From Neoechinorhynchus agilis (Eukaryota; Animalia; Acanthocephala), in assembly GCA_051530055.1 (NCBI GenBank), contig CM121342.1, forward strand, positions 654,797 through 718,796: 64,000 nt of DNA. The letters are read 5' to 3'. The translations under genes were made by a program, and so were the position numbers. The notes beneath the pieces were generated by a model, which did no database searches, had not been told where the DNA came from, and saw nothing but the letters and a program-made list of their open reading frames with translations. Of the stretch, positions 20,752 through 59,233 are shown piece after piece. Numbering within the stretch: the stretch's first letter is position 1; each line of letters begins with the position of its first letter.

Positions 20752-23700
20752 CTATGGAACAACATCGTCGCCAGCGTTTCGGGATTGATTGTCAAACTGT
20801 TCAGTAGTTGAGCTTTGTCTACTCTTTTTGTCATTCTTAACAGCACTTTCCTCCACATAGTCTCTTTCTTCAACTTTCCGGACTCGCATAATGGGAACGA
20901 TGGATATATCTCTTATAGCTCGTTGAATGGCGCAATTATTGACATGTTCACATTCAAGTCTGAAAATATTCCAGAGAGATCGCCGAGAGAGTTCGCATAG
21001 GGAAAAGAGGGTGCCCATCCATACTTTGGACAAGCTTCCAGGCCATAGGATACTTTTACCGACTCTAAATTTTCCTGTCCACGAAGCGCGAAGGAGTCCG
21101 TTTAAAAGAACTGCAGAAATATATTTAAGAGATGATCCGTAAATGAGCGGTTTACGGAAAATCCCGTTTTCCTCTACTTCATCATCTTGATTTATGCGTT
21201 CATCTTTAAGCATGAACAAATTCCAGTCCATATGAACATCCCAGATGAACTTAATCACCATATCAAGTGCTCCTGAGACTGCAAAACAGGCGTTCCAGAA
21301 GCTCGGACTGGTACCCGCCTGAACGATCGGTTTCAGAACGGCGAATGTGACGACCGGCATTCCGATTAAATACTTCATTGCATTCCAAAAATGTAGACGC
21401 ACTCGTACCTCGTAGTATCGTCTACAACATTGAAGAAATCTTGATAGATGTGGAAGGAGAAGAACCACTAGCATTATAATCAAATATGTAGTACTAAGCT
21501 TTGTGCTCAAGTCAACGTAAGCCTTTGAAGAGATGGGACTTCCCTTGTGCCAATTATAGAATCCCATGAAGAAAACTCCGAAAAACACAAGATCTCCGAA
21601 TACTGTTGTAAGACTGAGGAATTGATCGCCAATCCAGAAATGTCGAAATAAGACAGGGCGACATGATGGTCGGATTATTACATCGATTGATGTTCTCATA
21701 TACCAGTACCTTGCTTTTCGATACTGAACATCGAAAGGGTTAATGAAAATCAGCACAGTGATCAGATGAGCAAAGAAAGGAAACAGAAAAAGGTTTTTGA
21801 TTTCCATTATTGGTACATCGCTCGCCTGGTGGATTCTCCACATTGTAAGAAGGAGAGCGGAATGAGTCACTGTCAAAAACTGAAGTCCAATGTCTAATAT
21901 ATGTTCAAAGCTCATGTGATCACGCGGATCTAATTCAAAAATTAGTACATAATTAACGCCGTAGTGTTTCCAACAAAATGTACAAGCTGAAATGAATATT
22001 AATTCCAAGTCTATCAGGTATAAAGATCGATACATGTATGTAAGAACTGATATCCAGTGTAAGTCTAGAGGATAAGTCTTGAGTGGATTTGTCTCATTAA
22101 AATATAATGGCGAATAGCGAGCTTTAGCAACAAGTGTCGTGTATCAATCGACGTGATTCTGGAAACATGAAGGATTCCAGGTCGTAAAAATGCGAAAGCG
22201 GAAAATCGGTCTGGTAACTAAGGAAAAGAGAGTTAAAGTCCTAATATGATGAAATTCGTTTCTTATGGAGGTGGTATCTTCATAGCTTAAGGTGCCATAC
22301 TTTCATTCGATAAAACGTTGAGATGTTCAGATTTGGGGCTTAAAAACCTTGCATTTCAATGCCGGAATAACGAATTTTCTATGTTGATATCTCTTTTTAA
22401 AAGTAGGCAAATGACGGCTTTCGTGAGTATGGAAATTTAGTCCTAAATTATGCCGATATTAGCGAAAAAAATTGAAATAAGAAATGGAGGACTGAAGGAA
22501 GCACGTCAGGTTGTTTTAAATTCCAATTAGAACGGACATTGCAGCCAGTATCCCAGACCAAAGTCCGATTCTAAACAGCACCCAAGCACTAGCTCTTTCA
22601 TCTTCTCGTGTAACTCGCAACTGTCTCATCGCTTCGTGGCGGTTTCCACCCTCAAGTTTTTCAATATATATAGTTTCAATCGTACTAGTAAGATCACTGA
22701 GATCATCACTTGTAAAGAATATTGAATCGACGACATTTTCATGGAACCAGATCATTCCACGTTGAGTACCGAATACCTTATCGTGCTTCTTTAAGATTTT
22801 GCGAAATCCCGTATAGTTGAGTTCCCTGTATTCCTTGATCAAAACAAGCATGAAGTATAATTCACTCATTCCTAACTTTAGAGCTTTCATTCTCCGTTTA
22901 AATTGAAATTCGTCCCTCTTGGTCCTTTTAATCCAAGAATCGCTTTATAGGAAACTAGCATAAGAATTTAAATTTAAACTTGGAATATGCAGGAAAGGGT
23001 TGAAGCGAATCTAATTACTTTAAACACTCGTGGTTATCTCATGTGGTATTTATTGCTCACAAAAATATCTTATCATGTTTGTGGCAGCATTCTTTGACGA
23101 ACCTACAAACTTGCTTATCTAATACACAATTCACTAGTTAAAATGTTTGCCGTTTGAAAAACAACTGTTCTTCATTTATGAATGCTTAAAAAGCCTAAAT
23201 GGATCAAAGAATGAGTATTGAACATAACAAAAAAATCATTACGAACAAAAACAGTAAGGATGGTTTGAAGATAATTTAGCTTCAATTTATAATTTAAAGT
23301 CTAATCGATTTCAACGACATTGAATTGAGCGATTCTTGGTCTAAGGAGGTTGCGTTTCCGCTCCCAGAATTGATGAGCAGCGATTTTAGTAGACCGAATA
23401 TTCGACAAGACTCCAACGGGCGAGTCTTCTGATGGAAGCAATTTTTCAAAGTTTTGTTTTTTTGACTTTTCAAAGTCAAAATTTTCATCACCGAACGTCA
23501 GATCGATTTGTTGCTTTAGGACATTGAGCCTATTTTTTGATTCTTCGATTTTCGTCGCATAGAATTGGTTTATTTTTTCCAGTTCTCGTTTACATTGATC
23601 AAGGAATTCTTGATCGATATTTTCGTAGAACTCGCTCGTACTATCAGAAGTAATGAATCCATTGCTGAGTGCATTCGCTTGAGCAGAGTACAGGATCTCC

Positions 23701-23777
23701 TTCATTTCATCATATCGAATGTATTCCGATCTCCATTCGGGTGCTTTATGAGTCGCAAGGTATTTGGCGAATTTCAT
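20752..23777 (-). CDS. XPR1: XPR1/SYG1 SPX-EXS phosphate exporter, three coding blocks
   Basis: MKFAKYL...PEWR..YI.Y (SPX start), LNYTGFRKILKKHDK, GVNYVLIFELDPR, FRHFWIGDQFLSL, RRSLWNIFRLECEH. Confidence 0.93.
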
Positions 23778-26062
23778 CTGAAATGGATTTATTAGAAACA
23801 AGGTCTCAAAAGAAGAATTCAGCTTAAATCAGAGAAAAAAAGTAGTAGAAGACGTTTGTGGAAGGTAGCGAGATGAACCACTATGTGCGCTATATCTCTC
23901 AGGGGAACGAAAAGGCGCCTACGGGAAAGTTTCTCAGCGTCACTCACATAAGTCGTAGATACCATAAGAGAATTTACCTTAAAGCGCACTACTTCAAGCT
24001 AATTTTTGTCAAGCTGAATTTAAATTTTAAGACGCCCAAGTCGCGCAAAAGGTAAAGCGATGTCAAGATAGTGTGTTGCAACAAGATGAGTTAGTGCAAC
24101 TCACGTAGCTTATTAGGTTGTTTTTGTTGAGACCAAATTTTGTTTTTTGAATGGAACCCACTCAAAAGGGACTCGCAAAGTCTGAATTTGGGTTACCATG
24201 GAGTTGACAGAATACGAAACTTTTACAATTTTCAATATTGTTGGTATACTCGAACGCTCCAGAAATATGTGGCTCATTTGCCACACTTTCACGGCTTTAT
24301 CGATTAAAGTAGATGTCGTCGAATGGTGCGCAATTTGCTTAACGCTGCTCTGTTTGTTTGCTGGTATTAAAGTATGTTGCTTTGGTGTCAAGGTAATTGG
24401 TGTGGATACTACGCATTATAATGTTAAGATTTGAAGACCAGAGATCACATCCTCAAAGAAATGGAAATAATAGATCCTGAGTTTATCCTTCGTGATTGAA
24501 GTTTGCTAAAAAAGGAAGACGTTCTATCTGAAGAATGAAGTTTTGAAATGTAAATTTTTTACCAATAAATCCTGTAAATCGCCCCTGTTTCCCGAAGGTT
24601 ACTAAAGCGATCGCTTTTTTGTTTCTGTAGACTTTGAAGTTTCGAATGGCTTCGAAAATACCCACTAAAATTTCAGGGATACCGAACGTGGGCGTAAAAA
24701 CGGTGAAAAGTGTTTGTTTTCATCGCGTACGCAAGTGTTCATTGCTTTTGAGCAATAATTGCACAGATATCCCTATTCATGCTGAAGGATATGAACGGTG
24801 GAAAAGAATTCGAGTACGCCGCATATTGGCATATTTATTTTGTTCTTAAAATACGGCAAAGAGGATGACAAAAACATTAAGCTTCAAAGAACATGCATGG
24901 ATATCGTGAGTGCAGTGAAAACACAATAATGTTATGATTTTAAAATCATTATGTGAGCATTAATCAACTTGTATTTTACGAAAATTTGAAAAATGCCATA
25001 ATGGAGAAGTGCTATGAAGTCTTAGAAAAATGCTAGTATGCAGATCGAAGATTTCCACGCGGAGTATTGCTTGTACAACTTAAGAATTTTAATCCACTAT
25101 AGGTTTGGAAATTTGTCGGAATAGAACGAGAGAAACTCTAACGAGAATAAAGGCAGAACTTTTGCTTTTGTGAACTATAAAGAATTGGTTTGATTTTTGG
25201 CTAACTGCTAACAGATTTCAATGCACATTCAAAGCGAATTTTCATAGCTTTTAGGTGATTCCTTCAGTTTTAAAGCAAGAAAAGTTGGATATCGAGTTTG
25301 TCATCTTTCAAAATAAATCATTTTGATATGAGAAAAAACTGAAAAAAGAATTATCTTTATCAGCGTAAGAGAATAAAAATAAAAAGGTTCAATGTTTTCG
25401 AACCATATTTGAAAGTGATTCTTGTTACCTCCCCAACTCGAATATCACCATACGGCTAAAATACCACTGGGAGTTAATTCCTGACTATATTTTAAACTCC
25501 CTGATAAATAGTTTAGGCGTTTTATGATCGTGGTCACTTGTTTCCGACATTCGAACTCGTGTTCGTAATTCTTTGGATTGAATCATTTTCAAATCTTGCA
25601 ACAATTTCATTTTGCTGCATTTCGAAAAACAGGATGAAAACTAATGGAGACGACAATACGTGCCACCAAAATTAAACACTTCTGACGGGGTTTTCGTTGA
25701 AAACTGCGATTTCCGCACTTCAAAATCTTAAATGCACCGACTTGAGGATTAAACAACGGTTTCTAATTAATGACATTTATTGGTCAAAATTGCTCGATTT
25801 TGGTTCTATGACTCGTTTTTGCAACATTGCTTTGAACTCATTACTCGTTAATACAGCTTTCAAAAACGTTGGTCGTTTTGTTCAAGAGTAATAATCAATA
25901 AACACTCGAATCGTCTAAGTGATAGTGATCAATAAAAGTAAGCGCGCTGTATTTGTGGCCGTTTTTAGTGAAATCGATTTGCAAATACGGCACTCTGTAC
26001 GCGCAATATCCATAACAACAACAAAATAAATTAACGCCGATTGCAAATAAAAATGGAAAAAA

Positions 26063-28502: not shown

Positions 28503-28604
28503 TTTTGGTGTAGTGCCACTGCTTTTACCATCCAGATTATGTTAGCATAATGCTTCCGACTTTCCCCATTTCTCACATATAAGGCCCATTTCTCTTTTTT
28601 CAGA

Positions 28605-29972
28605 ATGATATCCAGAGCATCACAACAAATGAGATCTTCGTTGGTCAAATCCATACCATCAGTCGCCGCGATTCAAAGTCGCCTCATATCTAGTGCAACG
28701 AATAAATTTAAAGTCCTCGTTTACTCCGCAAAGGAATACGACATTCGTCATCTACAGAAAGGGGTCGAACGCTCTTCTATCAAAGACCGTGTGGAATTAG
28801 CTTTCGAAAAAGAAAATTTAAGTGCTCAAACAGTGCATCGTGCTAAAGCTCACAATGGGATCTGCATCTTTGTCAATGATGATGCCAAATCTGGGGATGT
28901 TGTCAATAATCTCAAAAGCCTAGGAGTTAAACTCGTCCTATTGCGATGCGCAGGTTTCAATAATGTCGATGTTCATAAGGCAGTTAGTGGTGGAATTAAG
29001 TTGGCACGAGTGCCAGCTTATTCACCGTACTGTGTGGAACAAGGTTTCCTCTTTAATGCTGTTTTGGGTGGAACGGTCTTGTCCGAAATATTGCCAAGGA
29101 TTTTTCTAATTTAACTCATTTAAATTTTTACAGTGCTAAAATCAACCAAATTGAAGATTTGACACATAAATACGCTAGAAAATCGGTCAATTTTGGTCGT
29201 CATCGGAAATATTAAAAAAAATTGAAGACTCATTCCGATAAATTACACTTTAAAATTTAATTCTCACATGGGGAGAAATCCTGTTGTAGCAGAATTTTCC
29301 GTCGGATGTCTCCTTGCACTTCAACGAAACATCAATCGTGCCCAGCAACGAGTATCGATTCATAACTTTAGTCTCGAAGGTCTGGAAGGTTTTGAACTCC
29401 ATGGCAAAACTGTGGGAATCATCGGTGCTGGAAAGATTGGTCAAGCCACTGCTGCAATCTACAAAGGATTCGGGTGCAAAGTTTTTGCCTATGATGTTTA
29501 CAAGGACAATCAAGCAGCTTCGAAAATTGGTTTCACCTACGAGGATGACCTCAATAAGCTATACTCAAGTTGCGATGTCGTAAGTCTTCACGCTCCACTG
29601 ACAAAAGATAATCATCACATGATTAACTCGGATGCAATCGCGAAGATGAAAAAGGGAGCGTACTTGATTAATGTTGGACGAGGAGCTCTTGTCGATTCCA
29701 AGGCTCTTCTCGACGGCTTGAAGTCCGGCAAAGTAGGAGGAGCTTGTCTTGATGTATACGAACATGAAGCCGCCGTTTTCTATTCTGATCATTCGACCAA
29801 AGTCCCAAAGGATGACCTATTGTCGCTTCTCATCTCATGTCCTAACGTATTGGTAACCTCTCACCAAGCATTCCTTACCACTGAAGCTCTTACTAACATC
29901 GCTGATACCACGCTGGGAAATCTTACGGAATTCCTCGAAGGAAAGAAGTTGACTAACGAAGTATTACCATAA
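28605..29972 (+). CDS. NAD-dependent D-lactate dehydrogenase (LdhA-type D-2-hydroxyacid dehydrogenase) with putative mitochondrial presequence; interrupted at 29036-29287
   Basis: LRCAGFNNVD, RVPAYSP, ELHGKTVGIIGAGKIG, SLHAPLT, INVGRG, LDVYEHE, VTSHQAFLT. Confidence 0.92.
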
Positions 29973-30231: not shown

Positions 30232-32349
30232 TCAATTATTTGACTCTCGCGGCAGGCATTCCCGCAATCTTTGAGCAGCATATTCCGGTGTTATATCTCG
30301 TTGAGGTTGTGCAAACATCTCATAACCGACCATGTATTTCTTTATGGCTGCTGATCGAAGAAGGGGCGGATTGAAGACGACATGCATGATCCAATGTTCA
30401 GATGAATCGAATCGTTTTCCCACTGGAGTCCCAAATATTCCCATTGAATAAGGAAACGTCATTTGAAAAAGGTTGTCGTATTTACTTATGGTCAATTTAA
30501 GTATTTTCCCGAAATATCTCACTTGATCTGAATTGAGTTCTGTTATACAATGGACTTTCGATTTTGGCAAAATCATTGTCTCATACGGCCATTCAGCCCA
30601 GAATGGTACCAAACATATAAATTCTTTGTTCTCAGCCACAACCCGATTTTTAGTCGCATGATTTGCTATTTCTATTTTCATGTAGTCAAAAAGAAGCTGG
30701 GAATTGTGGGTTAATGCTCAATGTTCCATTATCATGTCGGTGAATTTCTTACAAATCTTTTAACGGGACGTCTTTACATTCGATAAGGAATATATCGACA
30801 TTCATAATTTCCTGGCCCACAACGAAATGGAAGGCACAGTTTGTATGAGAACCAATATACTTTGATATTTACATTAATATCTCAAATATTTAATGCGTTT
30901 TCTCTATACTGCGAGTTTTTCTCTCCTCGAGATTTATTTGTAAACATGCAAATTTTCGAGGCCTCAACCTCCTTATCAAGCATTGCTTGCGTGCAATAAT
31001 ATTCGATAAATTCAAAGATCTAAAAAGAATAAGCGTCAAGTTCCGCATGGAGGAAAGGGTGACTTAGGGTTAAAGAATATCCTATAAAACAACTATAAAT
31101 ATCGGTCCCGTGAGTGGTTTAACCCAGTACGCTGGTTGTACTAAGCCTTTACTAACTAAAAGGGAATGAAATTTACTATTAATGAAGGAAATAGAAACGA
31201 TATATCCATGTTGAAAAAGGAAGGTCCTTTTTACAAGCAAAATTTCTACAATCCAATTCCGAAGTATGTGTAAAAATGCTACCAGCTCTGAGTTTTGTAA
31301 TGGAAATTCGTAGTGAGTTAATATTTAGTAAATTCATTCGCAAATTGTACAGTGAGCACTTTTCAGGTGGGGGAAGGTTCTAATCGACATTAAAAACGTA
31401 GACTTCGTAGCATGATGAAGAACGTTCTTAGAGATGCTTATGAGGACCCAAAGGTACATGGGTCCTCCAATTCTTTGTATTTTTTAACAATAAACGTGTT
31501 ATTATTGTAAACTAGGAAATTAAAGCACGAAACCCAGATAAAGCTAGACCGATTGTGATGCTTATTAAAAAAATTAATTAATTTTGTTTCAAAGCAATAA
31601 GGCGTAACCAGTCAAACTTATTTTCCTTGAAAACCCGATATTTTGCCATATACAATAATGTAGTTATTGCACGATTCCTTATAGCAAATCGAGAAAATTA
31701 TTTAGCTAAGTCTCATTTCGAAAAAGGTGACAAAAAAGAAGTTTTCAGAGCTGATCTCTGAAATAAATGGAAAATCGAGCAATTGAAGGTATGCACTCTG
31801 AGTTTTATCCTTCCGATCAATTTCGCAAGGAAGGTTCCGAGTGGCCCATATTTGGCAATGAGGATGTGGATTGGAGCAACCCATAAGTGATCCCCTGTTC
31901 TCGAAAATTTGAATCCAATCAAACCTTCCCGTTTTCTTCATTTCCAGATAAACGGTAATCCACGTTCTGACAATCTTCTCGACCTGCTCGTCCGACATAT
32001 TTGGAATAGTCATCTTCCTGTCTGGATGATAGCACATCACTTTACATTCTCCCGATTCCAGTCGAACTTTGAGTAGATCATCATTTGATTGAGAAACGAC
32101 ACTCGAAACGACTTCAGTTACGTTAAATGCCGGAAAATCGTTGTTAAAGACAAAAACATCTTTATAATCTAAATTTTTGATGCCGGAATATCGGAAGGCG
32201 CCCGGCATCAGACTATTGTCCATGGATTCAACCTTCTCATCGGATTTAGACCCTTCGCCTGACCAAGGACGATTAACTCTGTGAGGACTCACTAACGTCC
32301 ATTTGTCCAATAGGGGATTGTATCTGGAGTGGGAATATTCGCTCTCCAT
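30232..32349 (-). CDS. GALT: Galactose-1-phosphate uridylyltransferase; interrupted at 30713-31783
   Basis: RYNPLLDKWTLVSPHRVNRPWSG, FENRGSLMGCSNPHPHCQIW, VPFWAEWPYET, FPYSMG, GYEMFAQPQRDITPE. Confidence 0.95.
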
Positions 32350-33075
32350 ATTCTGTGTACCGTTGTTACTATGACGCTCAGGTAAAGACGAGAGCTTCGA
32401 GAATTTTAAAAGAAAGATACGAAACGATGTGAGCACAGCTTTTGAAGTAAACTTTCGTGACAATATCGTTAAATCGACTTTTTCAGAGCAAAAAATAATG
32501 TTTAACGGATCTAACAAATTGGTCGGATGAAATCGTATGAATTTGGGTGTTTCCGAAAAAATACCAAAATTAGTCCTACAGAAGCGAAAAGTGTTATTTA
32601 CTCCAACGATTTCAAAACTACACGGTTTGAAAAAAAGGCAGAGTAAAATGCGATTTCTTTGTAATGATTATTTACAACTGAAGTCCCTTAAATTTACTTA
32701 AACTTCTATTGTTTCCCGTGGGGACAAGGTTGTGTTGGTCCAATCAGGGTTTCGCTTGACAACGAAACTAACTCCGTGTAGCCGTGATTATAATAACACA
32801 TTTATTTGTTACTTAACAAGAATTAGACCAATGTACATTTTGAGTCCTCATTTCGTCACCCAGTTTGCCTTCCCGACCTTCTCCTCGAATTATGCCTTCT
32901 GCGAGCCGCTTTGTTTCGCTCAAGGCTGCTACGTCGCCGTTGAATCGGGCTGCAACCCAAGCTCCTAATATGTGAGGTTTCGAACTGGAATATGTTGAGG
33001 TAGAAGGTTTTTGAAATTTGTAATTCTTTGTTTGATTAACAATTTTTTCTTTCTTTTTCAACAAGAACTTACAAA

Positions 33076-33250: not shown

Positions 33251-33623
33251 GGGATGATACTGAAAGGGGAAAGTGGCCGAAACAGATATTATTTGCCGCC
33301 AGGAAACAGGACCACGTGCCACTTTAACATTGCCCCAAATGATAAAGTCAAAAAAACCTTGATAAAGGCGTACAAGATTGTGCCGAAATATCAGATTTTA
33401 AAATAAAATCATTTTAATTTCTTCACTATAAAACAACCAATATGAACAGTTCAGCCTTCAAACACACAGTAACATTGATTGTCTTTTTAATATTTTATCA
33501 GAAATGAACTTTCTTAGATTGAGATGAATAATGGAGGTATTACGATTTTCAAACAAAATTAAATTTTTTATTGAAATATGATGCCAGTTTCATCTAAAAA
33601 TTTACTTCTTAAAGCCATAAGAT

Positions 33624-33815
33624 CATTCACACCACCGTTTTGGATCACTCAGCTGCCGTCCTGCTGTAACGGTAGAAATGACGGATGTAGCGTTCCCTCT
33701 TTACACAGCCCAACTTATGTTTTGTAGGAAGAATGCTCCTTATCTCGGATCGCCAGTGATTCGTCTCAATCTCTTAGACAATTGCTTGAACAGGTCCTGC
33801 GTCGCGGTACCAAAC
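33624..33815 (-). mobile_element. CRE-like 3' fragment
   Basis: Highly similar to 3520-3705. Confidence 0.8.
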
Positions 33816-34461
33816 TATGCCATCAGTTATCTTTCAAAGGATACAATTTAAAAGTGGCCGACGACAAATCGAATTTCATATAAATGTGAGGCAATTGGAA
33901 AAATAACGATGGGAGAGACGCAACTAAACACGGGACGCCCAAACTGTGAACGATCATGCCAGAATGGTTTGAAGTGGACGATGTTAACCCATCATTTCTA
34001 GGGGCATTCCCATGCAAGGTAGGCTGGGTACTCTTGAATAGGCCAGCCCAGGTCACGAATCCAGCTGCCGTACTGCTCTGTCACGGCCGTTCACCGGAGG
34101 GCGACCATCTTGGATTCGCCGCGGTGTGCCTTCGCGTGCTATGGAGCTCTCAGATATTCAAGCCTGCCCACTTGCTTGCGATACCGTCAGAACTTGTTAT
34201 CGATGGGAAAAGACTGAAGTTCGAAGATAGTTGAAAATGGATGAAAGCCATTCGCGGAGGGGTTTGTTCAAGTTGCTCATAACTGCGCGACTGCCACAAT
34301 TGGTCGGCATACAGTCTCGTTGAAACTGGTCGCAGTGAGCGGTCCCAATCTTTTTTCGCCTTGCTGCGCCTGCCCACCGGGAGAGGGTCGCATTCGACAA
34401 GGTCAGCTGTTGGGTCCGAAAGGCTCTCTTCTGCCAGATCCGCCGCCGGAGTCAATAACAC

Positions 34462-34712
34462 ATTTTATTTATTTCGTTTAAGAAGAGCACCCATGTATCT
34501 CTGGGTCCTCGTGATCACTTTAGAGTTGATGACGGATCCGGTGTGGATGACGGATCCGGAGGGTGACGGTCGACGACCTTAAGCCCCAGATACTAGCCCC
34601 CTTTTTAGTCCGATGGGTAAAACGTTCTACCCCCGAAGCACAGGCTTCCCTCGATCAGCCACCTGGGGACACACCGCTTTGGGGTTTCAGGTTCCGTGGG
34701 CCACCCCTTTAA
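34462..34712 (-). repeat. SINE-like repeat with an 18-bp VNTR and an (AAAT)n tail; second copy 61363-61557
   Basis: GTGGATGACGGATCCGG(T/A) units next to a shared ~60 bp block (AAGAAGAG.ACCCATGTATC.CTGG...) and TTTATTTATT. Confidence 0.6.
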
Positions 34713-37454: not shown

Positions 37455-38187
37455 ATGAAAGACGTCTCAATAGTGCCCCTTCCGCCATCAGGATCACAAT
37501 TTGTGAGACCATATCGCATACACTACACAGACGTCAACCATAAATCTCGAATTTACGATGCGGTTCAAGTTCACGATGCAGTTTCGATCGTTGTGTATTC
37601 TTTGAATAAGCGCGGTAGAATATCGAGGGAAGAGATACTTAACCGCTTATAGGCAGACTCTTATCATGGTCCGACAACTTCGTCCAGTTGTTTTTATAAC
37701 TATTGCCAAGGAAAGGAGTAAAAAGGCGACTGTGTCCCAGTTGAACAAGGAGGACTTTGACCGCATAGATGATCAGCTGGCTGTGACTTATGAGCTTTGC
37801 TCAGGTGTGGTTGATAAAGCGACGAGTCTTAAACAAATCGCACTGGATGAGGTTGAGGAGGAGTGCGGATACAAAGTGCCAGAGAAGTACCTTCAAGAGA
37901 TTACGGCACTGCGTGGAAGTCTTGGGATTCACGGATCGAAACTCACGATATACTATTGTGAAGTGACCGATGAAATGAAGGTTTCTGAGGGTGGCGGTAA
38001 AGCATCAGAGCATGAGTATATTGAAGTTTGCGAAATTGGAATCGGTAAGGTACGTGAGCTATTTTATGACGAATCCGTTGGGAAGGCTCCCAGCTTGATG
38101 GTCGGTCTCATGTGGTTTTTGTATGAACGCGAGGATTTTTTACGGAAGAGTGGATATGTGTCTCCTACGGTATCTAAAAATAAATAG
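37455..38187 (+). CDS. NUDT14: Nudix UDP-sugar pyrophosphatase (NUDT14-like); 43-bp interruption near 37607-37649; alternative upstream ATG at 37413
   Basis: VHDAVSIVVY...LIMVRQLRPVVF...TYELCSGVVDK...DEVEEECGY (Nudix box). Confidence 0.85.
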
Positions 38188-41573: not shown

Positions 41574-43596
41574 TCAACCACTTGCATAATATTTTTGAAC
41601 ATTTTCAACGCTTGGTCTATAAATTTTTTTGTCCTTTAAATTCACAATCCAACCAGGTTCCAAACCGTATAAAATCTGGGTACGATGCTTCATTTCGTTC
41701 AAAGCCGTGTTTGAACATCGATCTTCATTTCTCATGTATTCGTAACCGTACTTCTGGGCCAATTTGAATCTCTCCACTTCGATCTCTTCTGGATCAGCGA
41801 GGTAGCCTCGCCATCGAGGGTCTGAATACATCTCCATTGATATCAGTGGAGGTGTGCCACATTTCGGAAGTGGAAGTCCTGATAGAAAAAATGATTTTGG
41901 GTCTTTTAATACAACTCGGCGTGTTCAGCAAGAAAAAATACGGCTGATCAAATCCAAAAATTTCGTTCAGAAAATTTGCAAGTGCATTCAAGTCGACTTT
42001 ACCTCCTCCGACTTATCATGTCAATTGCATCAAACTTGATCTTTCAAATTCTAATTTTCTGGTTTTTGCTTCAATATGCATATCATTTTCCTCCTTTTAG
42101 ATGGTGGATCGGCGACTGATTTCTCAATCGCATGTTTTCTTTTTGATTGCTTTTAGCAATCCATGCGGTTTAAACAAAATGTTTATTTTTGACACCATTA
42201 TTTCGGCGTTTTACTCCTTCTTCAGGTCCTCCCTCGGAAAAAAATTGGTCCTAAAATAAAACAATTGGTTTCAACAGCATAAAGTGCTCAAATAACGACA
42301 ATCTTTTCTTAGAGTATTGAATCCAAGTAAAAAACAAGGTATGAATTAAAATTTTAAATGAACTTCGATGGACGTTTGAGTAAATTATTATTTAACTATG
42401 AGAAATCTACAGACGATTTTACGTCAAAGGGGTGGTTATTCCTGAGCAAACTAAGTTGAGCCCCGCTACTATCAATATTTTCCGATATCTTCTTACGTTT
42501 ATCTAAAAGGCTTCATATGTTTTCCATAAACTTTCAAAACATTGTGATGAGACGTTTCGCCTTTGCCAAAATGCTCATCAGGTTATTCAAAAGATCAACT
42601 TGTAGTATGTTTCTGGACTTAGTTTTGATATTGTTCATTAAGCTGAAACCAATGGATGCTTGAAAAGCTTAACAATCATCCTGCACAAACTACAGATCTG
42701 GAGTATTTTTTGAAAACTTAAATAAAACCTTACAGTTCAATTTTGTTTCGAAGGTTTCGACAAACGACACCAATAGCCTGCGATTCTTTAAACTATCAAA
42801 GTCAAAAACACCAATTTAGTTAAAATCGAATTCAAAAATAGATTCTGTTGAATTAACCCTATTTTGTACGCAGAGTTGCTACTTAAAACATTAAGGCTTT
42901 CGATATCGTAGTATCGACAAGTGATGCGTCCGCCCAATTGTTCAATTGCAGCAATCACAGTTTCACTGGACACATTTTGAACTTCAATATTGATACCACG
43001 GGCGGCAAACGCATTGCTGCCTTCATCCGTCAGATTAAATCCAAAATATCCTTCTTCGACTGGAACCCGAAATATGCGGGTGTTACATATTGCAGCCATA
43101 TCGATAAGCTGATCGGTTTTTAGCTTTCCAAGATCAATCAATCGTTGGAGTTGTAGAAGTGAAATCGGAGTGTACTGACGAGCATCCTCAAAGCCTTCGT
43201 AATACGGTTCGTTTGGAACATCAAGATAAAATGGTTTGACGGCTTTTTTAGATTTTGACGAAAGTAAACTTGCTTCATATTGTGGCCTCAGTCTGCAAGG
43301 TAAGAGCTATAAACAAAATGTTGATTCTCTATTGGAAAAAAGGAATATATTACCCGTCTTTTACGAAGGATGGCACTTTCTGGGAGATTGGAGAGGTTGT
43401 GCAAAGTGATTCGTGGAAGTGTACTTAGTTTCTGCAGACAGGCTTCGACGGAGCGAAGGTCCATCGTTGAACTGTTTGGGGATAATGGGATCTTGCCTGC
43501 GTTTTCAAGTTGGCGGAAGGGAGGTACTACGATTTCGCGCTTTTTAAATCTTGGCTTGCTTGACAAGTTTCTACAAAATCGCACTAAAATCTTCAT
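41574..43596 (-). CDS. MRPL15: Mitochondrial ribosomal protein L15 (uL15m), multi-exon
   Basis: LPRITLHNL, KPFYLDVP.EPYY, RQYTPISLLQLQRLIDLG, NIEVQNVS...AIEQLGG, RGYLADP, ILYGLEPGWIVNL.DKKIYRP; GT-AG introns 43307-43353 and 43243-43269. Confidence 0.92.
42551..42581 (-). ncRNA. Hammerhead core inside the long MRPL15 insert
   Basis: CUGAUGA-GCAUUUUGGCAAAGGC-GAAA-CG-UC; stem I not evident. Confidence 0.5.
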
Positions 43597-45145: not shown

Positions 45146-45160
45146 GTAAAAAGATGTAAT

Positions 45161-46683: not shown

Positions 46684-47196
46684 TAGCCCGTTGCATTACA
46701 TTATATTTCGAACGAATCCGATGAGTTACAACGTTTTATAGACTGACTTTTTTGGTACTTAAAATTGACCTGTTTCTTTTGCGATTGTTCTCCTGCTTCC
46801 ATTACCCTTAGATTCTGCAACAGACCAACGACGGACTGCTACGGAGCGAGTCGTTCGGAAGGAACACAAAAGTTTGAAGTTCCTTTGAACATTAGAGGAG
46901 ATTTGGCCATACCAGTCACGTAAGTTATTTTTCTTATACACCATTAACCCGGTTTCTTTGCAGTTCAAGCAAATTCAACCCTTGTACACACTTGTGCTTG
47001 TACGTTGCCAACAACTACGGCGGAAACGTGGCCACGAGCGTCGTTTTCGTCGGTTTCCGTGGAAAAGTTTTGGACTCTGATCTAAATAAGCCGCAGGTGG
47101 TAACGACAAAATACGAAGCATTCTCGAGGATAAAAGGATCTCAGACGATGTCAGAACCACGTTATGAGGTCAGTTGAGCAATAAATCGAATTTTAT

Positions 47197-49360
47197 TTAC
47201 AATTTGGTAGAGTACACATTGATTCGTCTTGTTCTTTTTGACATTGTTGTTTGTTGTTGTTGTTGACCCAAAAACCCCGATGGCATGCTTCGAATCGTGT
47301 TCAGGGTTGATTGGCTGCTTTGATCTTTCATTTTATACCGAGTGTTGCCGGTCACGCTAACAAACGGTTGAGTTGGTGCAAGACAATGAGACATTGGAGA
47401 CGTTGGAAGTGGTTGAAACACTCTTGTCGTGAAGAAGTTCAGGAATCGTCTAGCGTAAATCTTCGGATCCGTTACGCTAATTGATTCTGGATCGGTGTTT
47501 AAAACAGCGGTTTTTAGTACGTGTTCAAGGCGTTTACGCACTCCGTATGACTGGAGGATGTCGATTATGCCCAAAAATACAACCACTCGCTCGCCACGAA
47601 ATGTCGTTGCAAGAATGCCACCGCCGAACATGTCAGTTGGAGCCGGAGATGTGCTGTCGATCCGAATCGGTTGACCGGGCGCCGCTATGGAGCCCATTGT
47701 CGTCAGATACAAGGGATGCGCTATTGTGCTGGTAAACACATTGAGGAAAGTGGTTCAGGAAACAGTGGGAGAGAAAATCCTTGGAGATGATGGAGACGAG
47801 TGATGATTATGGGATAGAAAAAACATTTTGAATTGTGTATATCGTGATCATCGCGACTACAAACTTTATGTGCATTTTAAAAACCACAAAAAAGGGAAGG
47901 AAAGAGGTCTTTTAGATTTTGCCAAATCCTTTTGTTTTTATCGAACCACTGCCCTTCTTTGTTACGTTTAACGTTTTGATCTAATCGATGGATTCCGATC
48001 AGCATAGAATAGTCCATGATGCCAAAGCTCATGAGTACAAGGCAGTCTTTCCCGATTGTCTTAACTAGACTGTCATAGGTTTGTTGCTTGACCCTTAGAG
48101 CGCCCTGTGAGAACATATCAAGGAAATCATTGTCCTTAAGTGTAGGTTGAGATTTCCTTTTTTCAGCCTCACTCGCATTTCGTCCGTATGTACTTCCTTT
48201 TAGATCGAATCGCATATGAATGGGTTTAAATGAAGAAGGCAGAATATTGTTCATCACAATCAATCTCACTTGATTGAATCGATTGACATAAGTGTAAAGA
48301 CCGAAGAACTTTGGTAGAAGGCTTCGTGTGTTTTGATTAAAATTCAAGAAATAAGAAGGCATTAGGCGCGATAGGAAAACTGCCTCGCCAGCTTGAACGC
48401 TCTTTATTATGAAATTGTCGTCCGCAGTCGCGTACAGGAACGATCCAGATCGGCCGGGATTCGCTAACTGTCGTAGTGGTTCCGAACATAGAGAATTTAA
48501 ATATTCTATTGTGGCAGGTAGAGAAAAAACCAGATAAAATGATACGTCATCGATTTTTTAAAATTTTTCAATAACGTGCTATTTGTTACCATTCACATCT
48601 GCCACCTTCAGAATCTTAGAGCAAAAATCATTCACACCACCGCTCCTCCTGGCGTAACGGTCGAAACTGCGGACGCAGCGTTTCCCTTTAAATTGGCGGT
48701 ATTTTTAAAAGAAGAATAGCCAAAATTAAATAGCTTGAAAACTGTTTTTTGACAAACGTCCAAGTTATTCTCTGCCTGCCACGATGAGGCAGATATGCCG
48801 AAAAGCTGTCTAAAGTATCTGAAAGCGATCGGCGCAAAGTGCTTAAACCGAAAATCATGGAACGGATGACTGGGGGTTAACGCCGATCCCGCACTGGGAA
48901 AGTCAGTCTCTTCCATGACGCTGAAATCCTGGATGAGAACGTCTCGTTGAGGCTGTGATTCCAATCGGCTCGTTGTTACCTCAATGGCTATTTGAACACA
49001 CCTCATTATATCTTCGTCCCGGCTACTTTTTCCAACAGCAGAACTCGTATGAACGTTGCCGGATACAGGGCTTTCTGAGGGTCGATCGACGACCTCTGAT
49101 TGTCCATGTTTCGAATCGGAAGCTTGTAAAAAGAAATTTGGAGGGTCGTCATCAATTCCGGCCTGTAAGCGATGACCACTCCTTGCGCGATGCAACCAAG
49201 AACGGTCGCTGCGCGCGAATGGACTGTTTTGTAGCGGACTATCCTCACAATTTGATCGGGATCGATGACGTAACGAATACAGTTTATCTCGACCTAACGA
49301 ATCCAGTCTTTGTCGATATAATCTTACTTTTTTACACCGGATCGAGTGCTGGTAATTCAA
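47197..49360 (-). CDS. PIP5K1: Type I phosphatidylinositol-4-phosphate 5-kinase, multi-block; start codon uncertain
   Basis: QRDVLIQDF, FKHFAPIAFRYFRQLFGI, SLCSEPL...NPGRSGS, LLPKFFGLY, RFDLKGSTYGR, IMDYSMLIGIH, FLGIIDILQSY. Confidence 0.93.
48630..48687 (-). mobile_element. CRE-like 3' end fragment inside the PIP5K insert
   Basis: GGGAAACGCTGCGTCCG...GAGCGGTGGTGTGAATG. Confidence 0.65.
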
Positions 49361-49549
49361 GCAAAAAATTTACATTTGTATGTGCGCTAAAATCAAGGAA
49401 GAAATCTAAGTTACTATTGACAATGTGTGCGTAAACGCTATTGTAATGTTCCTTTTTCCGGTGTGGTTTTTAGACTAAAGGAAATAATCGATGTTTGTGT
49501 AAGATTTTTTTAACGCATTTGATTTTTTTTCATTTACAAGCAACAACAA

Positions 49550-49990
49550 AACGTGTCGCCACCACACTCGCTGCGTTTCCTCTACTCCTTTGTAAATCCA
49601 AGTGCCGAGCTATCGAGCGCACCCGGAGTCTCCACTTCAAAGGGTACAAAAACGTGAGACCTAGTTAATTCTTTATATTTCGCCATCTTTCGGTCCTTCG
49701 CGGCAGTAGCGGCTTCGCCTGGGGACTGCACTACAAACCTCCTGTTAGTTGCCGCGAACGTGTCTACAGACGTGGCGTCCCAGAGAAGACATTTGCCTTC
49801 TCGCCACGAAAATACGGTGACGCCATCCGGACGACGACCATCGAGTTGGCACAGGTTGCTTGGCTCTCAAATGTTTGGGACGTTCACCGTTTTTAGGGCA
49901 CGCGAAATTACGTGTTTCAATTTAGCATGCCCTCCCCAGCTGATCCACGATCATTCCACACCGTCAACGATGTTCGACACAAATCGGTAG
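49550..49990 (-). mobile_element. CRE-like endonuclease-domain fragment
   Basis: [24 protein letters not shown]...GEAATAAKDRKMAKY. Confidence 0.8.
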
Positions 49991-50656
49991 ACCTAATCTG
50001 AGGGATACTCCGATCCGAACTGCTTCGTCTGCGAGGAGTGTTCCTACGGATGCAATGGGTAGGGCTTTTAACCATGCTCCTTCAATTTTTTCTCACCGTA
50101 AACAAGGACATGAGCAATTCAAAACAATCAGTCTTGATTTAATGGGAGGGGGAGATTTTTTTATTCGTACATGGAAATTCAATACTGTTTGAATATTGAA
50201 CTGTTCATATTGGTTGTTTTTTGGCGAACTTTCAAAACAACCTTGTGATCGATTGTTGGTCTATTATTTTTTAGGATTTCGTCATGAGCTATGTTTGTAG
50301 ATTGCGACGTTTAGTTTAAGTGAACATTCTCTTATTAATTATCAACCAAGAAGGAGCTTTCTCGAATATGATGAGCTGGGCCATTTTACCACTGATCAAT
50401 TTTAAAAATAAATGCATTGAATATTTTTATAATCTATCATCACTTTGCGGTTCGCATTGTCGAGTCGAATAAAAAAATTTACTTTTTAAACCCAACCATT
50501 TTTGATTAGTCGAACTATTTCCGTTATTATTTTGGTCGATTATTAATACCCGAGAGGGATATTGTCAATTTAAATATAAAAAATAAGTACCTAAGGTTAC
50601 AAACCTCGAGATCGTCACCAGCCTACAGAATGCCTCATTAGGTGAATTTTGGCCAA

Positions 50657-51180
50657 TTATGGAAACGTTTGCTTTGTTCTCTGTTCCATCATGTTGGCCA
50701 TTTCAACGTATATTGATTCTTTTATCAGTCGATATTTGTTGCTCACGGAGACGAGTTTCTTTGGACAACGCATTGTTTCATCTAAGAAGACCGTCTCGCA
50801 TTCTTCGCTTGGGGAGGATGAGTCCTCTTGTGATACAGGCAAATGTAGTCCATCGAATTTCCAAGTGTTCCGTTCAAAGTTTTTAAAGCGAATGTCATCA
50901 ATTAATCCAAATTCCAGATTTATTATCGAACGGAAAATGGGTGTTTTATTTATTGCTTCAAATTTTCGACGCCTCGCGTCTTCGTCAGGAAGCTTTTCTT
51001 CGGTTATCTGAAAAGGAATTAGAGGAGGGCAACGCTGTTAAACACATTCCGCTTGAGAAAATGCAATGACTCCTTAGAGTTCCTCAAGCTCATCATTAGG
51101 CATTGTTCTTCGCAGAAAAATGATCCGTTTGGATCTGTCTCGGGTGTTGACATGCCACCATGCAATATTGGGTAAAACAT
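50657..51180 (-). CDS. Unknown protein, 2 exons, divergent from KDM8
   Basis: E/K/D-rich open frame 51010-50657 after a TTTTCAG acceptor; upstream exon MFYPILHGGMSTPETDP... Confidence 0.4.
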
Positions 51181-51301
51181 TGACAGTTGTTGAAAGACTA
51201 AAATGCTATTGGAACTTTTGACGATCGTCTCTTGGTTTCCGTATGTGTGTGAGTGTGTGTGAAGAACGATTTCACCTAAAAAATGCCTCGAATTTGTAGA
51301 A

Positions 51302-53169
51302 ATGTCACAAATTAGAGCGGATGCTTTAGAGGTGATATGTAAAATTTGTCTCGAGAGCTCGAAACTCGATATTGTTGGAAACGTACCAGACAGCATGATG
51401 GCGATTCTTAGAAAATGCAAAGAGTCGTTGAATTTGGAGCATGAAGATACAAATATTGATTGGGTGCGCAGTAGATTAAAGCCGATAATCGAGCATTGTA
51501 GATCGTATTCTTAGCTAAATGTTCTGATCTAAATATTTTTCATTATCTTGTCCTAATCGATAGCCTCATTCTAACGGGATCTCGACACCTATCTTCAAAA
51601 AACTATACATCTATTAGAAGACTTACGGTATAAATTTTATTCGCATTTTGGTGACCTTGATCTATTAGTAAAATCAGCCTAGTTCAATTGCTGTACATTT
51701 TCAATTTTAGTTCATGGAGTTTAAGAAGGTAGTCGTGATCGATAATAACCTCTTTTTGGTTTTGAATCCGGAATTGAAAATAGTGTTCAAGTCAAATGTG
51801 TAAACTGTAATAAATCCAATGTGTCCATTGCGCGCAGATATTATTTATTAATTTTTATTTTTTGTTTTAAATCCGAAACATCTACAATGATCAATAGTGC
51901 TAATTAGTTGGTACCAACTGAACTGTGGATCTTGGAAAGACGTTTGCGATTATTGGCGTCACCTCTACGGAATAGCATCTCTTATGTCCATTGTCACAGA
52001 TTTTGTACAACAATTATGTGAGACATCAAACGACGATTTAATAAAAGATTTAATTTGCCAATGCGATCGGGCAATCCTGATGGGCGGGCCTGCTATCGAA
52101 CCTCTCGTATCAGAACTTATTGCGGTTCTGGTGCGCTCATGCTCAGATTCTGAACCATTGAAGTCGGTTCGTTTTATTTTTATAATTTTCATTTATCTGT
52201 TATGTTTCTAAGAATATGGATATATTCGAACGAGTCGCTCAAATCGATATGGACGATCGGCGCGTTAAGGAAATGGAAGTTCCGCCAACGATAGAAACGT
52301 TTGATAATGAATTTTTCCGAAAAGGAAAACCAGTGCTTTTGAACGGATGTATATCTCATTGGCCAGCAATGAAATCTTGGAGGTGGTTTTTTTGTGATTT
52401 TAGTCATTCGCAAATCAAATGATTGCTAAAGTTTTGAGTATTTTGTTAACTTGATCGGAGATCGAATCGTGCCCGTTGAAATTGGATCCAACTATGCAGA
52501 TATAAAATGGACTCAGAAGCTCATGACATTTAAGAAGTTCTACCATGAATATTTAATAAATAAGGAGAATTTGACCATTGGATACTTGGCTCAACATCCT
52601 CTTCTTGATCAGGTATGTAATTTGTTCGCATAAAACCTCATATCTTTTTTTGTGATTTCGGTGTTAATCCCCATTGAAAGCGATAAAATCGATACATTTT
52701 TCTTTTATACAGATTCCCAAACTAAGACAGGACGTATGTGTACCCGATTTTTGCTGCCTCGGAACCACAGAAGTCGTCGATATGAATATCTGGATAGGAC
52801 CGGCCGATACAATTTCACCTCTCCATCAAGATCCAAAACCCAACCTTCTTTGTCAGGTCCGATGATTTCTAATGCCTACACAGTGATCATTGCTTTTTAA
52901 ATATTTCCTAGATTAGAGGGACAAAGTTTGTAAGAATGATCAGTCCTGAGTATCGCGCCTTCGTGTATCCGTTTCCATCAACATTGATCAGTAATACTAG
53001 TCAAATGGACGTTATGAACCCGGATTACGAAAAATTCCCACTGTTTCGAGACGTTCCTTACATGGATACAATCCTGCGTCCGGGAACAATGCTGTATATT
53101 CCACCAAACTATTGGCATTATGTAAAGTCGCTCAGTCCAAGCATTTCTCTGAGTATTTGGTTCGAATAA
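51302..53169 (+). CDS. KDM8: JmjC hydroxylase KDM8/JMJD5
   Basis: N-terminal [84 protein letters not shown]; four short GT-AG introns. Confidence 0.92.
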
Positions 53170-57794: not shown

Positions 57795-59233
57795 ATGTCA
57801 AAAAACGAATTTCCTAAACGACGTGAATCACGTTATGGAATCGACGTTGAAGAGGAAGGACTGATCGTAAAGGACACACCAGCGGTCCTTGTACGAATTG
57901 ATAGACCATGCCACAAGATATCAGAATCGCTTCTAACTCGGCATGACAATCAGGAACTAAGCTATCGCGGATTCTTTAATCTAATAATCGTTCTATTCCA
58001 CATTTTATACGGTCGTCTTGCGGTTGAGAACATCGTGAAATACGGATCTTTTCTAAGACACAATCCGTTCGATATCATCGTTGTTCGATCATGGTCGAAT
58101 CCAGCACTCCGACTTCTTTTACTTTTAATCCCAACCCTTTTGATGCTTTTCGCTCTGGAAAAAGGAATAAGCACTAGAAAGATAAAACAAGCGGTTGGAA
58201 GACCATTGCAAATCTTAAACCTCGTGATAATGATAACGATTCCAGTTTTATATATTCATCGGCACCAAATGTCCATCCCCATTTTATACATTGCAGTATG
58301 TTTGCTATATGTTGCTCTCTTCTTAGCGAGTGCACCACAGAGAATGAGGGATTTTTTGTATACACTGTACGGCACTCAGCGACTTTAAAATGCTGCTCCT
58401 ACGTCCATATTAACTTTCTTTGTTGCAGTTATAGTGACAGGAAGCTCCTTTTAATTGACGAGATTAAAAAGGAAAAAGTTCTTTACCCATCAAATGTCAC
58501 ATTGCAGAACTTCCTGTACTACCTGGCATCGCCAACACTCTGTTACGAACTCTCATATCCTAGATCTTCAGAAATCCGCATTTTATTCATTATTAGAGAA
58601 TTATTTGAAACAGTAATGTGTCTAAGTCTTGAACTCCTTATAGCTCAAAAATGGATTGGACCAATACTGTACTCTTCAACGATTCCACTGATCAACCTCG
58701 ATTACCTTCAAATCATTGAAAAGTTCATGCGATTGGCCGTGCCTACTCACCTTTCATGGCTACTGTTCTTTTACATCACGTTTCATTCATTTCCAAACAT
58801 GATAGCCGAATTTCTCCGATTTGGGGATCGCGAATTTTACTTGGACTGGTGGAATGCGCAAGATATTGATGAGTTCTGGAGAAAATGGAACATGCCTGTC
58901 CATCGATGGGCGAAACGGCACCTTTACAAACCTTTGCTACAACTGCTACATTTCCCGAAATGGGGCGCATCATTTGTTGTTTTCTTTGTTTCGGCGATTT
59001 TCCATGAATATGTAGTGAGCGTTCCAATGTGCATTACGAGATTCTGGTTCTTCTTGGGAATGGGAGCACAAGTACCACTTGGATTCATTGTAAGATATTT
59101 TAAAGGAGATCGTGGCAACATGGCGATGTGGCTTAGTATTGTGATGGGACTGCCGATGATTATTATGGCTTACGTTCATGAATTCGTCGTAATGAACCAC
59201 GAATATTTCTTTGCTGTTCCATTAAAAGATTGA
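57795..59233 (+). CDS. DGAT1: Diacylglycerol O-acyltransferase 1; short interruption near 58323-58387
   Basis: SYRGFFN, YPSNVTL, APTLCYELSYPR, AEFLRFGDREFYLDWWN, FWRKWNMPVHRW.KRHLYKP, SAIFHEY, GNMAMW. Confidence 0.94.

Follow-up and report, generated by a model that had tools for sequence, protein, structure and literature searches.

We identified inserts without GT-AG boundaries and with self-pairing ends that are precisely removed, at three introns, from the mRNA of conserved genes of the acanthocephalan Neoechinorhynchus agilis. This second mode of intron removal runs beside ordinary GT-AG splicing in the same transcripts. The loci lie in a single stretch of 64,000 nucleotides (the window), for which an earlier note had claimed conserved genes split by precisely removed inserts that lack GT..AG ends. 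RNA joints over intact DNA bear this out for three introns, and none of the three has GT..AG ends. Calling the inserts a candidate new system was nonetheless too strong, considering that precedents have been published for Amoebophrya (PMC7789003), for Euglena (PMC12501133) and as SOS splicing (PMC12779559). Our literature search for non-canonical introns in acanthocephalans or rotifers found no description of them.

We compared positions 47150-53149 of the window with three RNA runs and a whole-genome DNA run; the RNA-verified set comprises three of about 11 loci, namely two introns of PIP5K and one of KDM8. The features of this region are:

48507..48784, minus strand: PIP5K non-canonical intron 1, 278 nt, joint 48506->48785, RNA-verified
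48768..48782, minus strand: 5' stem arm of PIP5K intron 1, 14/15 paired with 48511-48525
48511..48525, minus strand: 3' stem arm of PIP5K intron 1, partner of 48768-48782
47740..47963, minus strand: PIP5K non-canonical intron 2, 221 nt (from 47960) or 224 nt (from 47963), RNA-verified
51485..51893, plus strand: KDM8 non-canonical intron 1, 409 nt, joint 51484->51894, RNA-verified
52167-52212, 52383-52431, 52613-52712 and 52857-52911, plus strand: ordinary GT..AG introns of KDM8 with RNA joints, internal controls

Every RNA run contained the non-GT-AG joints of all three introns, whereas not a single DNA read did. The joined form is the major form at every one of them, with ratios that are alike across the runs; its depth is far higher than that of the unspliced form at two introns and about 1.5-fold higher at the third. 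All three removals restore the reading frame. Most loci, the verified ones included, have in-frame GT-AG alternatives close by; at the verified introns such pairs are no more than 30 nt away and are unused in RNA. The use of alternative GT-AG junctions, for which the earlier note had advised checking the RNA, thus did not materialize at these three introns. The RNA evidence consists of contigs assembled from a 31-mer graph, which drop rare isoforms.

For PIP5K intron 1 the joint has a depth of 61-83, and the sense ends read TC..TA, or AT..AT after a shift of 1 nt. Earlier coordinates of 48508-48785 describe the same junction within this 1-nt ambiguity. Removal joins FRQLFGISAS to EYLNSLCSEP, in agreement with the conserved spacing of PIP5K, and the duplex between the intron ends amounts to -25.9 kcal/mol. 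PIP5K intron 2, which was missing from the earlier list, has two in-frame 5' junctions that are 3 nt apart: joint 47739->47961 at a depth of 72-98 and joint 47739->47964 at 143-165, both seen in each of the three RNA runs but never in a DNA read. The former shares no letter across the junction, so its position is unambiguous. The sense ends of the intron are AA..AT. The core stem pairs 47943-47950 with 47749-47756. Both PIP5K introns have 3 unpaired nucleotides followed by the stem at either end, and pyrimidine-rich 3' ends.

At KDM8 the joined form reached a depth of 80-110 in all three RNA runs, versus 8-13 for the unspliced contig, and again no DNA read carried the joint. The intron ends read AT..CA (in the +2 register, AA..AT); the direct repeat is ATA, and a perfect 10-bp stem is formed by 51494-51503 and 51880-51889. 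The insert is removed as had been claimed, yet the RNA joint gives 409 nt instead of 408 nt; likewise, the cuts had been placed symmetrically within 0-3 nt of the repeat edge, but at KDM8 they lie 6-7 nt from the perfect stem. The four short introns of the same gene are plain GT-AG according to their RNA joints, as anticipated. Pairing between their ends is not significant (p=0.13-0.82), and their sequences indicate that canonical donors in N. agilis are very degenerate (GTTCGT, GTGGTT, GTCCGA).

End pairing was tested at each locus against 1000 random positions with the same spacing. The resulting p values were <0.001 for PIP5K intron 1, 0.003 for PIP5K intron 2, 0.02 for KDM8, 0.003 for GALT, 0.007 for DGAT1, 0.019 for D-LDH, 0.03 for NUDT14, <0.001 for XPR1 insert 1 and 0.19 for XPR1 insert 2. 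The inverted repeats claimed before thus pair beyond random expectation at eight inserts but not at the second insert of XPR1. Terminal duplexes of the verified introns range from -15 to -26 kcal/mol (p<0.001-0.02). Stems measure 8-15 bp and their sequence differs at every locus; no family common to the inserts was found, as blastn among them and against the rest of the window showed no similarity except three short matches of 19-42 nt, all to a segment inside PIP5K intron 1. The DNA depth over the verified inserts equals that of the flanks, indicating a single copy. Direct repeats had been reported and are present as TGT (D-LDH), ATA (KDM8), TTA (DGAT1), TTAA (MRPL15) and TA (NUDT14); they measure 3-4 nt at four loci (ATA, TGT, TTA, TTAA) and 0-2 nt elsewhere.

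At four loci, of which two are RNA-verified, the stem starts 0-4 nt from the junction; at KDM8 the distance is 7 nt. Depending on the register, the verified junctions fall 2-9 nt outside the stems. A fixed distance between cut and stem was ruled out, as the offsets span 0-7 nt. Ends of the form A...AT are allowed in one register at all four RNA-verified junctions, at NUDT14 and at GALT; as a strict rule this fails at D-LDH and DGAT1, and we keep it as a lead only. An ending in CAAT is possible for all three verified introns. Base pairing is a candidate for the removal signal: stems are enriched, but the verified junctions also share these possible sequence features.

Homology suggests that inserts in four further genes belong to the same class:

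30713..31783, minus strand: putative non-canonical GALT insert, 1071 nt, from a profile scan
37607..37649, plus strand: putative NUDT14 insert, 43 nt, TA direct repeat, AA..AT in the +1 register
58323..58384, plus strand: putative DGAT1 insert, 62 nt, TTA direct repeat
41907..42883, minus strand: putative MRPL15 insert, 977 nt, TTAA direct repeat

The GALT profile scan has its optimum at exactly 1071 nt, and the highest-scoring GT-AG pair falls 13.7 bits short of it and costs three residues. Its end stem pairs 31769-31783 with 30713-30727. When the GALT exons plus insert were compared with sequencing runs, the word share was 0.62-0.68, the exons making up 0.50 of the query, which is compatible with, though not decisive for, a spliced and expressed gene. 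Removing 43 nt from NUDT14 gives exactly the spacing of human NUDT14; the in-frame GT-AG alternative that we worked through (58 nt) leaves the conserved spacing five residues shorter. Alignment with human DGAT1 favours the LFLK spacing and hence a removal of 62 nt, in place of the 65 nt given earlier. At NUDT14 and DGAT1 the structural support comes solely from the end-pairing test, their whole-fold z-scores (-1.2 and -0.7, respectively) not being significant alone. The MRPL15 insert carries an inverted repeat matching at 10 of 11 positions, 5 nt inside each end; alignments to PDB entries set the junction between SLNVL and KDPKSFFL, and an in-frame GT..AG alternative loses one residue. In all four genes the GT-AG options that we examined alter the conserved spacing.

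The junctions of D-LDH and XPR1 are more ambiguous:

29036..29287, plus strand: D-LDH insert, 252 nt, inside the PAYSPxAVAE motif, TGT direct repeat
22933..23339, minus strand: XPR1 insert 1, perfect 12-bp terminal inverted repeat
22125..22520, minus strand: XPR1 insert 2, about 396 nt, a weak case whose stem is not significant

For D-LDH the profile optimum is 252 nt, and a credible GT..AG pair (29044..29289) scores just 7.6 bits lower; from its sequence, the insert is probably of the non-canonical class, though ambiguous. Neither the D-LDH of P. laevis nor the N. agilis D-LDH paralog has an intron at this site, and the insert looks like a lineage-specific gain. Both the D-LDH and the XPR1 gene of P. 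laevis are free of introns, and the XPR1 inserts are probably lineage-specific gains as well. The score landscape of the XPR1 profile is flat at both junctions, so homology cannot place them; at insert 1 a GT..AG pair (23394..22925) scores just about 2 bits lower, and at insert 2 a previously proposed length of 398 nt is out of frame, whereas about 396 nt fits. Individually, D-LDH and XPR1 may be ordinary GT-AG introns. A search of the FAM187-like exon against 1.8 billion representatives returned weak matches alone (E about 1e-6).

How could such inserts be removed? SOS splicing, described in C. elegans and human cells and conserved from nematode to human, is triggered by paired inverted repeats of any sequence, joins the RNA at non-GU-AG sites within or close to the termini of the repeats, operates on RNA and rescues genes broken by DNA transposons; it depends on AKAP17A, CAAP1 and RTCB and is independent of the spliceosome (Zhao et al., Nature 2025, PMC12779559). 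It has been published for fresh insertions of Tc1, Tc3, Tc4 and HSMAR2, and for three endogenous targets in UTRs or pseudogenes (PMC12779559). The verified N. agilis introns are alike in bearing inverted repeats that could form a duplex in the mRNA, in being removed from RNA while the DNA keeps them (0 of about 15-25 DNA reads per site lack the insert), and in having non-GU-AG junctions (AA..AT; TC..TA or AT..AT; AT..CA) near the stems. The N. agilis inserts differ in being old and single copy, and in interrupting coding exons in many conserved genes. As published, SOS splicing lacks precision and yields numerous junction isoforms as well as indels. In N. agilis a single in-frame junction appears to dominate at two introns, and the third has two junctions 3 nt apart, among the joints listed from contigs in which rare isoforms are lost. 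Moreover, the specified triggers are long terminal repeats (54 nt in Tc1), in contrast to stems of 8-15 bp.

The anatomy of the inserts is nearly identical to that of the introner elements of Amoebophrya, which have end inverted repeats of 8-20 nt, boundary direct repeats of 3-5 nt and no consensus end dinucleotides, coexist with canonical introns and in many cases form repeated families (Farhat et al., 2021, PMC7789003). The stems of 8-15 bp, the direct repeats and the non-canonical ends of N. agilis match this description. Amoebophrya, however, is a dinoflagellate parasite with repeated families, whereas N. agilis is an animal whose inserts are single copy.

We consider it most likely, with a probability of roughly 0.45, that the inserts represent a second, non-GT-AG class of introns with a transposon-like origin, removed from RNA by a structure-guided process of SOS type and not by the spliceosome. 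Each would have begun as a transposon-like insertion into an exon, as suggested by the direct repeats found at the junctions and the inverted repeats located close to the ends, and the copies would since have diverged to the single-copy inserts seen now. At the three verified introns, the transcript is made with the insert, whose ends are able to form a stem that would bring the junctions together; the insert is then taken out of the RNA at two non-GT/AG positions, nearly symmetric and 0-7 nt outside the stem, giving back the original frame, while the DNA retains the insert and GT-AG splicing proceeds alongside in the same transcripts. The enzymes would presumably be an endonuclease cutting near the paired inverted repeats, followed by a ligase of RTCB type. 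In the N. agilis lineage this SOS-type step may have become precise and constitutive for many genes. More tentatively still, hairpin-guided cutting and ligation by RTCB, independent of the spliceosome, could be a routine and precise second system that serves many fixed, transposon-derived inserts genome-wide, essential genes included.

The main competitor is a spliceosome with relaxed end recognition, in which the stem merely brings the ends together, a serious option that we nonetheless regard as doubtful. In Fritillaria borealis, non-canonical introns derive from families of non-autonomous DNA transposons with recurring ends and are handled by a modified major spliceosome (bioRxiv 10.1101/2025.08.15.670264). 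This is a precedent for diverse transposon-derived ends being processed in an animal, one that likewise has a compact genome and terminal inverted repeats at the splice sites. Precise and efficient removal, and a 5' site alternating by 3 nt at one intron, would also resemble ordinary (alternative) splicing; the canonical donors of N. agilis are already very degenerate, the 3' ends of PIP5K introns 1 and 2 are pyrimidine-rich and a possible common CAAT ending could be an unusual 3' site. On the other hand, G is missing as the first and the last letter in introns ending in AA..AT, AT..AT or TC..TA, and in-frame GT-AG pairs close by are passed over. Given that at four loci the stem begins 0-4 nt from the junction, a spliceosomal 5' site would probably be buried in it. 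The motif of U12-type (AT-AC) introns (ATATCCTT as 5' site with an AC 3' end) occurs at no verified intron end. Additionally, N. agilis lacks the multi-copy terminal-repeat families of the Fritillaria kind: neither a family nor a recurring end sequence was found among its inserts, and the DNA depth over the verified ones equals that of the flanks. Inserts as short as 43 and 62 nt would accord with the SOS-type route, and the unambiguous AA..AT ends of one intron would favour it too. On balance we favour structure-guided, SOS-type excision over a relaxed spliceosome.

An unlikely alternative is another machinery, comparable to that of euglenids, which would recognize a short stem by its defined distance to the intron ends and might release the intron as a circle. 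Nonconventional introns of euglenids and diplonemids have variable non-GT-AG borders and a stem that joins their ends, and release as circles has been reported (PMC12501133, PMC6221363). Few unpaired nucleotides before the stem, non-GT-AG borders and conventional introns alongside are shared with N. agilis, and the layout of PIP5K introns 1 and 2 recalls the 3 free nucleotides followed by a paired CAG in Euglena (PMC12501133). However, the protist code (CAG/CTG pairing, with 5-6 nt before a purine at the exon start) is not seen: the verified introns start with ATC-GTGG, AAA-GAAGG and ATAATCGAG-CATTG and end 3-7 nt past the stem, and a search of them for the signature 5'-N3-CDG ... CH'G-N5-6 before a purine exon found no instance. 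The offsets also vary from 0 to 7 nt, and Euglenozoa are very distant from animals.

It is highly improbable that we are dealing with ordinary GT-AG introns whose junctions were misplaced, or with dead genes. In-frame GT-AG pairs do occur near most loci outside the verified set, scoring 7.6 bits lower at D-LDH and about 2 bits lower at XPR1, but the RNA excludes this for the three verified introns, whose genes are expressed and intact after removal, and at GALT, NUDT14, DGAT1 and MRPL15 the examined options shift the conserved spacing. Even less credible is an artefact or polymorphism, such as reverse-transcriptase jumps at hairpins, assembly errors or transcripts of insert-free alleles. Hairpins and short direct repeats would favour template switching, and the RNA evidence comes from assembled contigs; yet the joined forms are the major forms at three introns, by a wide margin at two and in similar ratios in three runs, at one joint not a single letter is shared, every joint is in frame and regains the conserved spacing where homology fixes the position, a 31-mer graph is unable to join across repeats of 0-3 nt, and an empty allele was seen in no DNA read. 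Ciliate internal eliminated sequences have short direct repeats (often TA) and a transposon origin, and are precisely cut from the DNA. Programmed elimination of this kind, in which the RNA would mirror rearranged somatic DNA, would fit the direct and inverted repeats and the precise removal, but can be dismissed almost entirely, since N. agilis DNA keeps the inserts, with no DNA joint at three of three verified sites at about 15-25x and even coverage across them, and unspliced RNA contigs contain the inserts, which are thus transcribed; of the earlier suggestion of structure-guided splicing or DNA excision, removal at the RNA level is what stands.

The inserts also leave their mark on annotation. 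Public N. agilis gene models are truncated at them (GALT at 215 aa, P0001; D-LDH at 234 aa; XPR1 without its SPX domain), and a search of protein collections for products of N. agilis transcripts across further junctions matched genome-derived, truncated proteins alone. Because of this truncation, BUSCO-based counts of gene loss in N. agilis (PMC12256650) may partly be annotation artefacts.

Hairpin-ended introns have until now been found mainly in protists, and SOS splicing mainly on engineered or recent transposon alleles. Here, transcripts demonstrate that in a metazoan the mRNAs of conserved genes are routinely freed of inserts with hairpin ends and non-GT-AG boundaries. The N. agilis inserts therefore offer natural substrates for studying cut-site precision in structure-guided RNA excision and the path from an insertion in an exon to an intron. 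If removal is truly of SOS type, N. agilis would provide the first natural large-scale set of substrates for this process, and a live example of exon insertions becoming introns.

Three N. agilis RNA runs (X2-X4, assembled contigs) were compared with one whole-genome DNA run of the same species (X8, raw reads) over positions 47150-53149. The RNA runs have the character of RNA, with intergenic depth near zero. As the earlier note had claimed for one PIP5K and one KDM8 insert, introns without GT..AG ends are removed there in all three RNA runs, and so are four short GT..AG introns:

48507-48784, (-), PIP5K intron 1, 278 nt
47740-47960 and 47740-47963, (-), PIP5K intron 2, 221 and 224 nt
51485-51893, (+), KDM8 intron 1, 409 nt
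52167-52212, 52383-52431, 52613-52712 and 52857-52911, KDM8 GT..AG introns, spliced out according to RNA joints in X2-X4

The last four agree with its further statement that the short introns of these genes are ordinary, and both kinds of intron share transcripts. In X2-X4 the spliced form is deeper than the unspliced one at each non-GT..AG intron: about 240 (unspliced 9-14) at PIP5K intron 2, 80-110 (unspliced 8-13) at KDM8 intron 1 and 61-83 (unspliced 41-51) at PIP5K intron 1. No read of X8 carries the joints of these three introns, and X8 covers the inserts evenly, at single-copy depth. Given joints in RNA and none in DNA reads, removal takes place at the RNA level, and the programmed DNA excision that the earlier note had also considered is unsupported in the sequenced material.

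The ends of these introns are able to pair. PIP5K intron 1 is laid out as ctca/TC-(15-nt arm)...(15-nt arm)-AATA/gaat, in which 14 of 15 arm positions pair, and its removal restores FRQLFGISAS/EYLNSLCSEP across the junction. PIP5K intron 2 reads aac/AAA-GAAGGGCAGTGGTTC...GAACCACTTTCCTC-AAT/gtg; both of its removals are in frame, the 221-nt one being positionally unambiguous. In KDM8 intron 1, CATTGTAGAT and ATCTACAATG form a perfect 10-bp stem 6-9 nt inside the ends, with an ATA direct repeat. Read in one of the registers allowed, each of the four verified junctions has an A start, an AT end and a pyrimidine-purine step at each cut, which in so few cases is only a lead. The best duplex that the two ends of each intron or insert can form was set against those of 1000 randomly chosen, equally spaced position pairs within the window.

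End pairing of introns and inserts (p)
PIP5K intron 1 (RNA-verified): <0.001
PIP5K intron 2 (RNA-verified): 0.003
KDM8 intron 1 (RNA-verified): 0.02
GALT insert: 0.003
DGAT1 insert: 0.007
D-LDH insert: 0.019
NUDT14 insert: 0.03
XPR1 insert 1: <0.001
XPR1 insert 2: 0.19
Four RNA-verified GT-AG introns: 0.13-0.82

PIP5K intron 2 is cut at either of two 5' junctions one codon (AAC, 47961-47963) apart. Both are abundant, at about 40:60 in each of the three RNA runs, and thus yield two forms of the protein, with and without one Asn. PIP5K intron 1 is polymorphic, with a 3-nt deletion at 48765 (10 of 25 DNA reads) just inside the 5' stem arm and A>G variants in the interior at 48618 and 48624, all of which leave the stem untouched.

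How are such introns removed? SOS splicing, common to C. elegans and human cells, operates on RNA at non-GU-AG sites near inverted repeats, is triggered by their pairing whatever the repeat sequence, and needs AKAP17A, CAAP1, RTCB and SUT-2 (PMC12779559). These features match the anatomy of the N. agilis introns, and an SOS-type route is the favoured candidate for their removal (probability about 0.45), although SOS splicing as published is imprecise and the triggers specified for it are repeats of great length. The main rival, possible if rather doubtful, is a spliceosome with relaxed requirements like that of Fritillaria (bioRxiv 10.1101/2025.08.15.670264): it would suit the precise removal, the alternative 5' site 3 nt away and 3' ends that are pyrimidine-rich in two introns, but not intron ends without G, a 5' site covered by stems and the lack of repeat families. 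Some other machinery is improbable, and artefact, DNA excision and misreading jointly take the small remaining odds. Reverse-transcriptase jumps or assembly errors are unlikely to have made the joints, since the joined form is the major one at all three introns, recurs in each of the three runs and keeps the frame, and one joint lacks any shared letter. Transcripts of alleles without the insert are also an unlikely source, as every insert is present in all DNA reads across its site and the spliced/unspliced and two-joint ratios are alike across the RNA runs.

Full-text literature searches turned up no description of introns of this kind from acanthocephalans or rotifers, and the two N. agilis genome/transcriptome papers are silent on introns of any sort. 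In anatomy, Amoebophrya introners (PMC7789003) are the nearest published match; the stem-dependent code of Euglena introns (PMC12501133) is not followed here.

The inserts are single copy, and blastn among them and within the window found no common family. The D-LDH and XPR1 genes of Pomphorhynchus laevis are intronless, and a D-LDH paralog of N. agilis, also on CM121342.1, has no intron at the insert site; this suggests that the D-LDH insert was gained in the N. agilis lineage, as the XPR1 inserts may have been. With direct repeats (TA, TTA, TTAA, ATA, TGT) as well as terminal inverted repeats, the inserts are consistent with old exon insertions of the DNA-transposon type. The D-LDH protein itself is of bacterial type (55-59% identity to myxobacterial and other bacterial enzymes), and acanthocephalans may have acquired it horizontally long ago.

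The other inserts were judged by homology. For GALT, a profile from 60 homologues scores highest at exactly 1071 nt; with the top GT-AG pair the score is 13.7 bits lower and three residues are lost. For D-LDH the optimum is 252 nt, the direct repeat is TGT and the removal restores PAYSPYCVAEFSV, as in acanthocephalan relatives; its junction is nonetheless ambiguous, because a plausible GT..AG pair (29044..29289) is only 7.6 bits lower. A 43-nt removal matches human spacing exactly in NUDT14, and in DGAT1 62 nt fits instead of the 65 nt proposed earlier. In the MRPL15 insert (41907-42883, 977 nt) the direct repeat is TTAA and an inverted repeat (10/11) lies 5 nt within each end; the first intron of that gene is plain GT..AG. 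Homology constrains neither XPR1 junction, and GT-AG options score nearly equally. The FAM187-like exon gave only weak hits (E about 1e-6) against 1.8 billion representatives. The RNA-verified introns, too, have in-frame GT-AG pairs no more than 30 nt away that go unused in transcripts, so at other loci such pairs are weak evidence against a non-canonical reading.

The locus is compact, AT-rich and animal, with Pfam matches to XPR1 (SPX and EXS domains), 2-hydroxyacid (D-lactate) dehydrogenase, GALT, Naf1, MRPL15, dTMP kinase, PIP5K, KDM8 and DGAT1. Between GALT and NUDT14, a GC-rich block (33600-37000; up to 47% GC against about 36%) with long open frames on both strands and no Pfam match may represent foreign or mobile DNA that has decayed. 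A palindromic, high-copy repeat (50910-51040) lies between the PIP5K gene and the first KDM8 exon; DNA reads cover it at a depth of 200-500, compared with about 15 on either side, and many of them link opposite strands. Related mobile-element fragments at 49550-50350 and 41050-41490 encode similar peptides (PRKYG.PIR), with 2-3x DNA depth, many polymorphic sites and low-depth RNA contig cover. A 163-aa frame at 51022-51510 (- strand) is spurious: the plus strand is KDM8 exon 1, which ends at 51484 and is joined in RNA to 51894.

Public gene calls of this assembly end at inserts: GALT (30235-32667) is called as 215 aa running into its insert, D-LDH (28551-29969) as 234 aa, and XPR1 (20755-23828) as 394 aa that include no domain but EXS, the EXS exon in the window being identical to N. 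agilis NCBI protein ACOME3_004739. Published BUSCO gene-loss estimates for N. agilis (PMC12256650) may be inflated by such introns.
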